DNA of 64,000 nt from the NCBI GenBank assembly GCA_964035545.1, contig OZ037773.1, positions 6,477,751 through 6,541,750 of the forward strand. Direction: 5' to 3'. Of the stretch, positions 8,401-15,404 are shown piece after piece. The stretch is from Bugula neritina (lineage: Eukaryota > Animalia > Bryozoa). Under the pieces are notes generated by a model. The model was not told where the DNA came from. It saw nothing but the letters and a program-made list of their open reading frames with translations, and ran no database searches. Positions within the stretch are counted from its first letter, which is position 1. Every line of letters begins with the position of its first letter. Position numbers and translations under genes: made by a program.

Positions 8401-9975
8401 AGAGCGTATGGTTACAATAAATCACGGTACATTTCTTCAGAAGAATCGCTGTGAGTAGAACACACATTAGCTTTCTATAATCTTATATCATAAAAACTCA
8501 CACATTTTTATAGTCGCCATTCCTGTGAGAACCCCTAATAGAAAGAGTTTTTTGTTAAATCGGGCTAAGGACTTATTCAGATGGGGCACAGGTGCAATTA
8601 TGACTGGATGCTCTTCCTAAAATCACCAATAGCCTTTGTCGGGTTCGAGCCCATGACTCCGTGTTTACTAGACAAACGCTCTAACCCCTAGACTACAGCT
8701 GCTCCCTATAAGCTATCTATAATAACCTTATAGCGAACTTGAAATTAGCATCAACACTCATGTTAATTCTATTTTGATTTCTGTTAACAGAACATAGACT
8801 GGTGCTTGCATCAAACAACCATTAAATTAATATATCAATTGTTTCATTGAAATTGAAAAATGACTTCATCTATAAATAAATAGAATGCATAGCGATTTAT
8901 AATTGGCAATGACTAAATTTGAGAATAAAGTGTAAAATAGAGCTTATTTAATGTATCAATTAATTCAAATAGTATATTTTTACAGGTTTTAAAAACATAA
9001 ACAAATTATTATTATATTGAATAAAAATATATGGCGATTCAGGCACGTAATTTAGCACATGTTCATTTTTGTGCAGCGTTCATTTGTTGAGTCAGACATA
9101 TATGCCCTTTCAACCTTTACAACTGGACAATAGGCTATTTTTTAATAATTGTGACTGTTTGTTCTTTAGAGGTGTTTTAAATTTTAGTAAGATTCTTACT
9201 GTATGATGTGGATAGAGATGGTAGAGTATCAATGCAAGATATGGAGAAGTTTCTAACATCTCTTTACAAGCTGGTTGGTCCAGCATTAGCGGCAGGCCTG
9301 GAACCACCTGCTTCAAGAGTAGAAAACATGTTTTCTAACTGGAAGCTTGTAAGAACTAAAACATTACATCTTGTCAGAATGTGATGTTTTCAATTCTGTT
9401 TTATAGTAAATATTTTTGCAAACTAGATTAATCCACAAAAATCTCCGCGTTCCAGTTGATTATTTTCTTTAAAACTGCAGCACTATACATTTTAATTAAA
9501 AACTTAAAAAAAATTTGGAGCAAAGTTTTTCAATGCAGCTGGTTTAACATATTATTATTTATATAGATTTAATACTTTTACCACAATTGGTTTTTGAAAT
9601 TAAATTATTAGTGATATTTATAGCTTGCAAAATGCTTTATAAGAAATATGTCTTCGACTCTTGACATTATAGAAGCAGTTCACCTTTTTACTTGTACTTG
9701 TTTCTATATAGGCCATCTCTTTTGTGTAAACAATTTAGTTGTTCAGCATAATTATTCTCACTATATTATCAATTCACAAAACTTTGCAGTGTAATGTTTT
9801 ATTTCAGGCTGGCACGTCACATCTCTACCTGGAGGACTTCACATTTGGATCTGTCTCAATTTGGGCTAACGATCTCGCAACAGCTTTTATTACCCATCTC
9901 ATTGATGTCGTTTTCAAATTCTTTTGTAATAGTGTTGATGAGCGACTCAAAAATGATATAACACACCTGAAATAA
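5430..9975 (+). CDS. NCS-B: divergent NCS-family protein with three tandem copies of an extra acidic N-terminal exon, up to about 418 aa
   Basis: Exons 5430-5469, 5736-5951, 6236-6445, 6682-6897, 7583-7607, 7779-7830, 8282-8450, 9188-9348, 9808-9975, total 1257 nt in frame. Starts MGNKSS. EF2 DIDNKGFVSFND, EF3 DVDRDGRVSMQD, EF4 degenerate. Confidence 0.82.
5990..6225. repeat. 11-bp minisatellite (ACTGAGTACAY)n
   Basis: Tandem actgagtacat/actgagtacac units filling the intron between cassette exons 1 and 2 of NCS-B. Confidence 0.9.
6481..6670. repeat. 11-bp minisatellite (ACTGAGTACAY)n
   Basis: Same unit, between cassette exons 2 and 3 of NCS-B. Confidence 0.9.
8511..8707 (-). mobile_element. 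tRNA-derived SINE, family 1
   Basis: Reverse complement of 4253-4473 (ctggatgctcttcctaa...ctaacccctagac). Confidence 0.85.
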
Positions 9976-11957: not shown

Positions 11958-12293
11958 TTACATGTCATCTATGCTATCTTCATCAACTTGAGTTGGCAGC
12001 TCGAGGTGTATAATCCTATAGTCTCCCATGTTGATCGAAGTGACGAGGCTACGAGCCAAGGACTGACAAATCCATCTGTGAAACTTTAAGCTGAACTCAA
12101 ACTCCTCGACTGTAACATAACCCTTCTTTTCCTATAAACAGAAAAATATTGTTTTTAAGTATGAAAAGTAAACTTCCTATAAAAAATGCTTCTTGTTTCG
12201 TACAGGCTATTGGAAACATCACTGACACACTTCATTTATGCAATTTTAAAGTATTATTATATATATATATATTTATATACATATATATATATA

Positions 12294-12344
<51 letters not shown>

Positions 12345-12653
12345 CTTTATTATATATATATTATATATATATATATAGCTCTCACTTAATGCTCAGCAAT
12401 GACATTCAGTGATTGAGCTCTCTCATCATGGTCACAAACTCAAGCTGCTAGCATTTTGCAAGGCTCGTGACTCCTAGGTGACCCCTAGAGTCACTTGAGC
12501 TCTCTGGCTTGAGTTTACACACCGTTTAAATATGCTTTAGTAGAAACATAAGTTTCTACTATTGCGAAGGTGTGGGCCATGGTAATCTGTTCTGTGCTGA
12601 TGAGGGGACAAACCCCGAAACAGCTGCTGTCCACAGATTGAGGTATATATATG

Positions 12654-12706
<53 letters not shown>

Positions 12707-15404
12707 TTATATATATAACTTACCATATCTACACTGACTTACTACATGTATGTATAATAACTTACCATATATACATCTATAATATGACTTACTATATCTA
12801 TAATGGAGAAAATTCTTTCAGCTGTATAAGAAGATTCTCCCATATACTTTGTCAACCGAGAGCCAAGAAGGGTGAAGATAGAATCCAGAACTGCTTTGAT
12901 ATTCTCCTCAGTGATACAATTATTCCTCTCAACATTGTAGAGTCTTGAGTACCCTAAATCAGTCAAATAGAAAACCCTGTGTTTCAACTTTTACTAGGGC
13001 AGGCAGCTTTTTTTTAAAATTATGATTCGTTCCCTATTTCGCTCTAAGTAAAATTTATACATTAAATTGATATATTTTAAGAGTTTTCAATAATTTTTTT
13101 CAGGTAGACTAGCTCTTGCTCCTTTCTTTTGTATATTCTCTACATTAAAAAGCTACAATATTTGGTCTGTCATAAAAACAGTTCTATAACTCTGCTGCTA
13201 AGTTACTTTTCTAATTCACCTAATTCATACTATTAAACGATTTCTACCGATTTTTCAGCAAATGATGCAAGTTAAATAAACATCAAAATATAAATACACA
13301 AGTTTTTGCTAAATTTTAAAGTAAAACATATAAAATCTTATAAAAAAGAAGTTTTTTTACATTAGGATTGCAGTTGTATATTCAATATAATCATTAACAA
13401 TTTGAAGTTGTTTTTTGTGCTCTTCAACATGCGTCACTTCAAAACTGCTTCTAACCCCAGACGCTCAAGTAAATAATAAACAATTATAATAAATAAATAA
13501 CACAAATCACATTACACAACAATACAACACAACAAAACACACCACACCACAACACACCAAACCATACCACACCACGCCACGCCACGTACCACACGCAAAT
13601 AAACATTAATTATTATGTCATATATTATACCTACCCACATATTTTTAATACTATAAGCTATAAGACAAATGAAAACTTCGAAACTATCATGCAAAAATTG
13701 GGAAGCTTACATGTATTGTGAAAATTCTGTTATACATGAGTTTAATCTACAACAGTAAACACTACGTGAAGCCTTCTAATTACGACTCCTCTTTGTTTAG
13801 TTCAGCTGAGCTCTCACCAAGATATTATTTTGACATTGTGTAGGTTTTTATTATCAAACCCTTAAAATTATGTTTATGAAACAGAATTGTTTTTTATTTA
13901 GACAATAATTTCTTATATTTTTATTGTCAAAGAAGTGACTAATAGCTCGTTTATAAAATATTCTAGAATCAACTTGTTATTCAACTTACACGCTGCCTTC
14001 TGATGCACTGGGCCTTCAGTCAGAATACTAATAGTCTGCATAAAGTCATCAAATGTGATGAACCCTTGTTCATCTGCGTCTATGGCATTGAACAGGTAGT
14101 GGGCGTAGAACTTGGCGTTTCCTTCAGGATACACAATAGATAGCACCTCCTCAATCTTCTACAAACAAATAAGATTTATACATAGTATTGAAAAATAAAT
14201 TCTTTGTACAATTATTTTAAAAACTAGATTCTGAGCTTTGCATTTTATTTTTTCAAATAATAAATTTATATTTTGAGAAAGAATCGCAAGATTACATATC
14301 ATTTTTACTGATAATTATCTCAAATTTAAAAATGGTAGACTTTGTTACTACTATAGCATTTATAACATTACAGGCGTTTTCAATTCAAAGCCCTTTGATG
14401 AATGAAAATATTTTGAAGTTGTCTTCTTTTTAAACATACATTTGACTGGTTCACTGTTATACTTCCATTAGTAGATCTAGCATAAAATTTTGCTGGGTTT
14501 AAAGTTAAGCCAAATTTTTTTTAGCAAAATCATTAGTTGCAGCTTTAAAAATTAAAAATTTAACTTTTTATTAATTATTAAGAACCAGCTTTAATAAAGT
14601 TTTAAAAGATTTGGTCACAAAGTTTTGCTCACTTCGCTCAAAAACTATTACGTTGTGACTTATTAGTTGACTAACTGCCATGGTCACTTTGAGCCTGCAG
14701 TGTCTCTATTAGTTCTGCTACTGGCACAATTGGGCATCATTATCAGCCTTTACCGACTTTCTTTCTAAATCTTTTGATGAAAATAACCAACAAATGTTGT
14801 GCTTTATAAGATATTGTCTTACCTGAGGATACAGCTTCCCATCTATTGCTTTCTTTTCAAACGCTTTACGCCTGAAAAATTGGCATACAAGTAATATAAA
14901 TAAAAAACCTGATTTTCAAGCTGCTAGTATAAATAGAAAGCGCACGACTTACAGAAATTGTAGACAGGCACTATCCAATTAGCGCTTGTCTGTCCTTCAA
15001 GTAGCAATTTAAATGGTCACTTAACTGTTTTACCTTTTAGTTTTGTTAGCAAACTATATATTATACAATGCTTCTTTTTCTATATTTGAAAAGCACCAAC
15101 TGCTTTTTGGATTTGATTCAAGTTTGAATTATGAGCAGTGATCGGCTTACCATTCTTCCTTTTCCTTATCCGAACCTGTGGAGTCAATATAAAAATATAT
15201 TCATATAATACTCGCATGCATGTTATAACAAAAATAAATGAGACTATTATTTGTCTGTTATCAAAAGTTATTGAGCAAAGACGGACATATATGCATGACA
15301 TAAGGAACTTTCTAGTATAAACTAGACTACATCATCATCTACTTACAATACAATGTCCAACGTAACTCTTGGGGCAGGGGTGCTTTCTGGAACAGGTTCC
15401 CCAT
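11958..15404 (-). CDS. NCS-C: divergent NCS-family protein, about 211 aa, 6 exons
   Basis: Exons 15404-15347, 15175-15151, 14871-14823, 14158-13990, 12953-12793, 12131-11958, total 636 nt in frame. Starts MGNLFQK. EF2 DADEQGFITFDD, EF3 NVERNNCITEEN, EF4 DIEKKGYVTVEE. Confidence 0.88.
12258..12377. repeat. (TA)n microsatellite
   Basis: Directly visible. Confidence 0.95.
12592..12636 (+). ncRNA. Minimal type I hammerhead ribozyme
   Basis: Stem I CUGUG/CACAG, core CUGAUGA (12597-12603), stem II GGGG-ACAAA-CCCC, GAAA (12617-12620), stem III ACAGC-U-GCUGU, GUC cleavage triplet ending at 12631. Confidence 0.88.
12644..12718. repeat. (TA)n microsatellite
   Basis: Directly visible; abuts the hammerhead-containing insert. 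Confidence 0.95.
13500..13597. repeat. Degenerate pentamer repeat (CACAA/CACCA/CACGC)
   Basis: Directly visible in NCS-C intron 4. Confidence 0.75.

Follow-up and report, generated by a model that had tools for sequence, protein, structure and literature searches.

A 272-nt non-LTR retrozyme family with a type I hammerhead motif in the TA microsatellites of Bugula neritina

Introduction

In a 64,000-nt stretch of the genome of the bryozoan Bugula neritina (the window, by which we mean the whole stretch of DNA that was analysed), a short structured insert lies between two TA-rich tracts, close to an NCS-like exon, and carries a hammerhead ribozyme motif near its 3' end. The locus raises the question of what kind of element this is and how such an element enters a TA microsatellite. 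Animal retrozymes are known for circular RNAs that are abundant and processed by ribozymes. How they return to DNA, and via which enzyme, has until now been argued from phylogenetic co-occurrence. A preliminary description of the window, made from its letters, had left two identities side by side, a solo pLTR or a retrozyme monomer. We find that the insert is likely to be the DNA copy of one unit, slightly shortened at its 5' end, of a young retrozyme of 272 nt that is non-coding and has a type I hammerhead.

Results

Limits of the insert and its surroundings

The segment 12376-12643 was used as query against the same 216-Mb assembly, and the genome matches span its positions 3-268. From these matches the insert has a length of 266 bp (12378-12643, plus strand) and not of the approximately 230 bp, starting at 12415, that had been proposed before (Table 1). 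It begins at about position 19 of the family unit, the first ~18 nt (CACAGATTGAGGTATTAT) being absent or merged into the TA tract, and it ends at the fixed junction of the family, GATTGAGG|TA. At three positions, including 12585 (A for C) in distal helix I, it differs from the family majority. The (TA)n tracts that had been noticed are found on both sides, roughly within the limits of Table 1, with (TA)≥6 runs at 12258-12377 upstream and a TA run at 12658-12703 downstream. The two hairpins reported upstream of the ribozyme are likewise real, according to both a repeat search and the computed fold. One of them is long and branched, with outer arms at 12436-12445/12507-12516 and an inner bulged hairpin at 12467-12478/12484-12494 (GTGACTCCTAGG/CCTAGAGTCAC) which is also present in the fold; the arms of the other one were placed at 12538-12547/12552-12561 by the repeat search of the window.

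Table 1. Features of the insert and of its immediate surroundings (positions in the window).
Feature	Position	Strand	Evidence
Target microsatellite, upstream part, interrupted, (TA)n-rich	12254-12377		Sequence; (TA)≥6 runs
Retrozyme unit, 266 of 272 nt	12378-12643	+	Genome matches 96-99% identical; array period 272; junction tables
Branched long hairpin, unit body	12436-12516	+	Repeat search; circular MFE fold of a natural full unit
10-bp hairpin TAGTAGAAAC / GTTTCTACTA, 4-nt loop	12538-12561	+	Repeat search; fold
Type I hammerhead ribozyme motif	12591-12637	+	Sequence; descriptor; partial Rfam alignments; 133 exact cores
3' terminal TTGAGG, followed by TATTAT in tandem copies	12638-12643	+	3' junctions; array linkers
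Target microsatellite, downstream part, interrupted (TA)n	12644-12717		Sequence; TA run
NCS-like EF-hand exon, neighbour, approximate limits	12798-12987	-	Minus-strand ORF 12742-12987

The insert had been described as antisense in an NCS intron. The part of this statement that stands is the NCS-like EF-hand exon on the minus strand, ~155 bp from the insert, whose ORF includes an NCS-like segment (…ITEENIKAVLDSIF…); a further EF-hand exon lies on the same strand at 13913-14146. The downstream exon that an intron requires was not located, and terminal EF4 exons were searched for and not found, so that an antisense position in an NCS-like intron is no more than plausible. A second NCS-like gene has plus-strand exons at about 2360 (2360-2500) and about 9205 (9205-9384), and the two NCS/KChIP-like EF-hand genes appear convergent; the retrozyme is located in the space between the two or inside them.

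The hammerhead motif

The motif is complete, as had been read earlier and as the descriptor confirms. The core segments CUGAUGA (12597-12603) and GAAA (12617-12620) and the GUC of the cleavage site are combined with a 6-bp helix I (UCUGUG, 12591-12596, with CACAGA, 12632-12637), a 4-bp helix II (GGGG, 12604-12607, with CCCC, 12613-12616, and the 5-nt loop ACAAA) and a near-palindromic helix III with a 1-nt loop (ACAGC-U-GCUGU, 12620-12630, with arms at 12620-12624/12626-12630). The conserved core set is present throughout (C3 U4 G5 A6 N7 G8 A9, G12 A13 A14, an A15.1-U16.1 pair made by A12620 and U12630, and C12631 as H17), and the topology is that of type I, with helices II and III capped, helix I open and stems of 6/4/5 bp. 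Cleavage is predicted between C12631 (C17) and C12632, at the same position that the preliminary description had given. A descriptor that asked for the core and for minimum helix lengths of 5, 4 and 4 bp detected exactly one site in the 64-kb window, which is this hammerhead, and none in 300 dinucleotide-preserving shuffles scanned on both strands.

With Rfam, no hammerhead was matched at 3-kb scope, and at 91-nt scope there were sub-threshold alignments to RAGATH-1-hammerhead (19.1 bits) and Hammerhead_3 (18.6 bits), with the core in register in both. The model to which the preliminary description had pointed, RF00163 Hammerhead_1, has a gathering threshold of 34 bits; this was not reached at 3-kb, 91-nt or whole-genome scope, and in the whole-genome search the 272-nt family was not reported. 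Because the Rfam score is sub-threshold, the hammerhead was assigned from its defining features. Matches to mir-297, mir-1277, pestivirus 3'UTR and snoR11 at 12643-12713 and 12259-12329 were rejected as TA/TG low-complexity artefacts, with a bias about as large as the score.

When the hammerhead pairing is imposed on the 78-nt domain, its fold has -22.3 kcal/mol against an MFE of -24.7, which puts the active fold 2.4 kcal/mol above the MFE. The enforced fold retains all three helices, and helix I is extended past a 4x4 internal loop by a distal helix, the 3' strand of which is GGUAUUAU. This distal helix contains the motif UAUUAU, so the putative priming site to be discussed below is part of the ribozyme domain. 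As a monomer, helix III has in the fold only 4 bp with a triloop and contributes -1.2 kcal/mol, compared with -15.5 kcal/mol for the intermolecular duplex or dimer. Many metazoan type I hammerheads show dimer-dependent behaviour, in line with the weak helix III found here (PMC4209133, PMC7229834), and it is plausible that this hammerhead would act as a dimer.

Type I hammerheads were also seen in metagenomes (OFER01004867.1 and others, Ga0208763_1002213; L061-L066, L060). They are single and unrelated to the unit; their helix III (ACAGC-A-GCUGU) is like that of the unit, their helix II is GUCC/GGAC or GACC/GGUC, and their helix I is different.

A dispersed and very young 272-nt family

The genome search returned 745 candidates, and the 78 scored matches, which are 96-99% identical, are distributed on all large contigs. 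The 25-nt ribozyme core has at least 133 exact copies in the genome, compared with 0 for the reversed control, and in at least 112-133 copies every core nucleotide and each of the three helices is preserved without any difference. Among what would count against its reading, the preliminary description had named a lack of other copies that conserve the core with stem covariation; copies with a conserved core are plentiful. Copies are either single or arranged head to tail in arrays with a period of 272, made up of 266 nt plus a TATTAT linker; one example has 5.1 copies with 99% identity and (AT)n on both sides, and an array is located at G000:C9:3146061-3147432. The unit has a GC content of 45% and its longest open frame is 49 aa, even in a 4-mer. 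A circular fold of a natural full unit reaches -101 kcal/mol (z = -6.5 with respect to shuffles), with 71% of the bases paired.

In a comparison of 38 copies, no region has a mean minor-allele frequency as high as 1%, which makes the family very young and at the same time too uniform to show covariation. The variant within the ribozyme that is common to copies sits at the loop nucleotide of helix III. A sister hammerhead family that could serve for covariation was not found in the genome, where old diverged copies have merely decayed.

The family has the features by which non-LTR retrozymes are described: a short unit without ORF (within the range of 150-450 bp), one type I hammerhead, monomers together with head-to-tail multimers, GC below 50%, and no LTR, PBS or PPT. 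It is a metazoan non-LTR retrozyme and not a new kind of element, and of the two identities originally considered for the insert it is the retrozyme monomer in a TA microsatellite that holds, the window containing a single unit of a dispersed, ORF-less family which forms arrays elsewhere.

Unit RNA is also found. In an RNA-Seq run obtained by random priming (260 M letters, contigs only), the unit reaches summed word depths between 6,000 and 47,000 and accounts for ~7 M letters summed, that is, about 3% of the run, compared with a share of at most ~0.1% of the genome for 745 copies of 272 bp. With such a difference, DNA carry-over cannot explain the depth, and we infer that the unit RNA is very abundant. 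In an oligo-dT metatranscriptome, a contig spans the unit junction, going back 272, which fits either a tandem transcript or a circle.

Insertion junctions

About 20 of 21 insertions examined across the genome have a TA run as their 5' flank. As (TA)≥6 runs constitute only 0.5% of the window, this preference is far from chance. The 3' end is constant in 21-24 distinct insertions, in which …CACAGATTGAGG is followed directly by TATATA…; this fixed junction, …GATTGAGG|TATATA (GAGG|TATATA), lies 12 nt downstream of the cleavage site. The 5' ends are variable. Eight of 21 fall within unit positions 1-25 (binomial p = 3e-4), corresponding to insert lengths of 0.96-1.03, 1.98-2.03, 2.99 and 5.04 units and hence to an excess of whole-unit sizes. 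The others are scattered over the unit, many of them where a T[A/G] is shared with the TA flank, and the genome matches show an additional cluster inside the ribozyme. The fixed 3' end together with the variable 5' truncation led us to propose target-primed reverse transcription as the mode of insertion.

In every copy, including that of the window, the GTC|CAC junction is uncut or religated. Mini-insertions of 12 nt starting exactly at the cleavage site, which were sought as a footprint of cleavage, occur at only two loci, so that the DNA gives no direct proof of in vivo cleavage.

Other elements in the same microsatellites

The genome also contains hammerheads at the 3' ends of decayed elements, one of them with a GIY-YIG-like remnant just upstream of the ribozyme. 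Used as a query, this 93-aa remnant retrieved at least 422 EN candidates, with open frames of up to 740 aa. In representative copies, a Cys-rich linker joins an RT-like region (…FDICNFYPSI…, …YRDDGL…) to a GIY-YIG-like C-terminus. These copies carry a 3' UTR hammerhead, occur in inverted pairs and are bounded by (TA)n; their 3' junctions fall on UAUA sites inside the element, and a tail of ~65 nt may be present. Searches of the ORF against Pfam and of PDB sequences gave nothing; its nearest Atlas clusters carry HTH_animal, DUF8422, GIY-YIG and RVT_1, with more than 2,800 homologues of ~700 aa, all of them unnamed. Over the genome, Pfam RVT_1 detected only LINE and LTR elements. The only genome-wide match of Pfam GIY-YIG is an exon of an SLX1-like cellular endonuclease (L031:1471-1725, minus strand; G000:C1:24630658-24630858), which is not a transposon and was set aside. 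Endonuclease-positive Penelope-like elements (PLEs) have been described as preferring (TA)n and as having tails, partial tandems and inverted copies shortened at the 5' end (PMC8557442), and judged from their sequence the resident elements match this description.

An intact PLE family of ~700 aa with a minimal hammerhead is represented at L056:3308-5527, L058:3280-5415 and L057:4750-6900(-)/7395-9056(+) (starting at G000:C3:8396000, C2:27306000 and C7:11062000, respectively), always between (TA)n runs and often as inverted pairs. TA microsatellites look like landing strips, since several independent retrozyme arrays and PLE copies share them with leftover TA runs in between (L051, L052, L053, L055, L059; for instance, G000:C6:4963555-4964926 and C5:14265833-14269265). 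Beside a PLE 3' end, and inverted with respect to it, there is a 45-nt retrozyme fragment made of the ribozyme end and the first 18 nt (L043:2228-2292 and L044:2228-2272, minus strand), which looks like a very short 5'-truncated insertion of the family.

A BLAST comparison of the unit with the PLE loci L056-L058 and L039-L050, which cover a few PLE families, revealed no similarity beyond small inserted retrozyme fragments. The preliminary description had considered a linkage of the copies to RT/GIY-YIG ORFs; the apparent linkage consists of separate insertions in the same TA tracts. The ribozymes differ as well: those of the PLEs in this genome retain the hammerhead fold with other stems and have a helix II of 5-7 bp and a helix I of 3-5 bp, compared with 4 bp and 6 bp, respectively, in the unit. 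According to previous work, the PLE minimal hammerhead combines a long helix II (6-8 bp) with a short helix I (4-5 bp), and the canonical metazoan type I motif has a 6-bp helix I and a 4-bp helix II (PMC4209133).

On the minus strand at L053:6700-9755 (G000:C4:21363700-21366755) lies a LINE whose ORF of 961 aa is open and whose 3' tail is (CAAA)n. At least 12 LINE copies in the genome keep the 961-aa frame intact, and this family looks currently active.

Discussion

The 272-nt unit is like the metazoan non-LTR retrozymes (Cervera & de la Peña 2020, NAR, PMC7229834) in having one type I hammerhead per unit, with a 6-bp helix I, a 4-bp helix II and a short palindromic helix III, in its size, which is within 170-400 nt, in the lack of ORF, LTR, PBS and PPT, in its GC content below 50%, in its monomers, dimers and multimers and in its abundant RNA. 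Unlike them, it is inserted almost exclusively in (TA)n and has one 3' junction, 12 nt past the cut site; furthermore, its arrays are short (up to ~5 units among those seen) and dispersed instead of long satellites, and RNA circles, observed in those systems, are here putative. The (TA)n-preferring PLEs and their derivatives (Craig et al. 2021, PMC8557442; Li et al. 2026, bioRxiv 10.64898/2026.07.22.740005) resemble the unit in other respects. They too target (TA)n, are truncated at the 5' end, form partial head-to-tail tandems, have inverted copies next to each other and carry their hammerhead close to the 3' end, and RT/GIY-YIG elements are present in the same microsatellites. However, the derivatives described usually share the 3' end of a PLE, whereas the unit has no similarity to the PLE 3' ends or pLTRs examined, and its ribozyme has the canonical architecture instead of the minimal one of PLEs.

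Plant LTR retrozymes (Cervera et al. 2016, PMC4918200) are also non-autonomous and depend on hammerheads that excise a structured RNA, which becomes a circle and then a template for reverse transcription, but they have type III hammerheads in LTRs of ~350 bp, PBS, PPT and 4-bp target duplications, are mobilised by Ty3/gypsy elements and form circles of 600-1000 nt; by this comparison a plant-type identity was ruled out. The satellite hammerheads of newt, Schistosoma and cave cricket share with the unit a type I ribozyme in tandem repeats of ~300 bp and an unstable palindromic helix III suggesting a dimer. These form long satellite arrays, and microsatellite-targeted dispersed insertions are not documented in the literature on them that we searched. 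In the literature searched overall we found neither the ribozyme sequence itself nor any description of strict (TA)n targeting by a retrozyme, of a single 3' junction within distal helix I or of quantised insert lengths.

Several other readings of the insert have to be weighed against the retrozyme. It could be a solo pseudo-LTR or, more generally, the 3' fragment of a coding PLE that has suffered severe 5' truncation. PLEs with 3' hammerheads are indeed abundant in this genome and have (TA)n as their site of insertion; 5' truncation is usual among PLEs, and partial tandems occur (PMC8557442). The palindromic helix III is also a feature of PLE ribozymes. However, apart from the absence of similarity to the PLE 3' regions examined and the different layout of helices I and II, the unit repeats seamlessly with its period of 272, in 24 insertions it never runs upstream into ORF sequence, and where it lies beside a PLE a TA run separates the two; the solo pLTR of the preliminary description is thus not supported, and we consider this origin quite unlikely. 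A SINE-like passenger of the LINE family with the 961-aa ORF, which would supply RT and endonuclease, could also give a fixed 3' end with variable 5' truncation, as this is a LINE signature too, and many intact LINE copies are available. The LINE copy examined, though, has its (CAAA)n tail and lies outside a TA run, while the retrozyme lacks such a tail, ends as GAGG|(TA)n and shares its target with PLE-like elements instead, and we hold such a partnership to be very unlikely.

It could be argued as well that the family spreads without any RNA intermediate, as a TA-targeting MITE, a Helitron-like element or a satellite propagated through recombination or eccDNA, with the hammerhead as a passenger. 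MITEs of the Tc1/mariner type do target TA dinucleotides, Helitron insertion takes place between an A and a T, and unequal crossover can make tandem arrays grow; but the ends of the unit carry no terminal inverted repeats, only the 3' end is fixed, partial-plus-full head-to-tail units are found at more than 20 dispersed loci and the unit RNA is very abundant. We regard a purely DNA-level repeat as extremely improbable. Neither do we give much weight to a motif that would be catalytically dead or irrelevant in a family spreading by other means, a view to which the sub-threshold Rfam scores, the weak monomeric helix III, the poor in vitro cleavage of PLE-type ribozymes (PMC4209133) and the near absence of cleavage-site footprints could lend support. 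Against it, the core and the three helices are kept identical in all those copies, with their common variant confined to the loop nucleotide of helix III, the motif is not expected by chance, as the shuffles indicate, and efficient cleavage is known for hammerheads with this layout from invertebrate retrozymes (PMC7229834), which makes a dead ribozyme highly improbable.

For the retrozyme, the junctions suggest a way back into DNA. Tandem genomic copies would be transcribed, in agreement with the RNA abundance observed in one RNA-Seq run, and the hammerhead, whose activity is probably greater when two units pair via the palindromic helix III, would cut after GUC. A cleaved RNA would begin in vivo at CACAGAUUG with a 5'-OH. 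From the literature on these families, the 272-nt monomers so released would be closed into structured circles by a host ligase. An endonuclease would then nick (TA)n, and the TA 3' end could anneal to the UAUUAU placed just 3' of GAGG and prime reverse transcription there, which would proceed round a circle or along a multimer and cross GUC|CAC, as the fixed 3' junction and the inserts of more than one unit suggest. Finally, according to the junction statistics, TA microhomology may let the cDNA be joined across the break. In many cases this would happen on reaching UAUUAU again, giving whole-unit inserts, and in others earlier, giving 5'-truncated ones. A circular or multimeric template is needed to explain inserts of 266-1372 bp because a primer sitting on the UAUUAU of a cleaved linear monomer (unit positions 13-18) could be extended by only 12 nt before the template ends. 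Arrays like those expected from a circle would also result if reverse transcription jumped from one linear monomer to another, or if it copied a multimeric transcript left uncleaved. The enzymes would most likely come from the resident PLEs, which share with the unit the (TA)n target and the habit of inserting as partial tandems and inverted copies; no sequence link to those examined was found. A PLE partner is our best inference from this common target and insertion style, and the 272-nt element fits the proposal that retrozymes are non-autonomous dependants or derivatives of PLEs (bioRxiv 10.64898/2026.07.22.740005).

A more specific version of this scheme goes further, and this version we hold to be possible rather than likely: the UAUUAU of distal helix I could be a 'landing pad' that primes reverse transcription after a nick made by a (TA)n-specific Penelope-type endonuclease, rolling-circle reverse transcription could take place on a ligated circle, and re-annealing could set the whole-unit lengths. 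The ribozyme domain would then be both an RNA-processing and an integration site, in a family that would still be active and very highly expressed.

As to the copy of the window, it has only one ribozyme and no upstream partner, and hence cannot release unit-length RNA. We regard it as a recent insertion, probably inert, that lies close to an NCS-like gene or inside it and is probably neutral for this host gene. The family to which it belongs is unusually clean, being less than 1% diverged in a compact 216-Mb genome, with one target, one 3' junction and quantised inserts, so that the priming site, the circular template and the Penelope-like partner are directly testable. If the more specific version of the mechanism is true, the junctions of the family in this small-genome marine invertebrate would for the first time document clearly, at the level of the genome, the integration of animal retrozymes.
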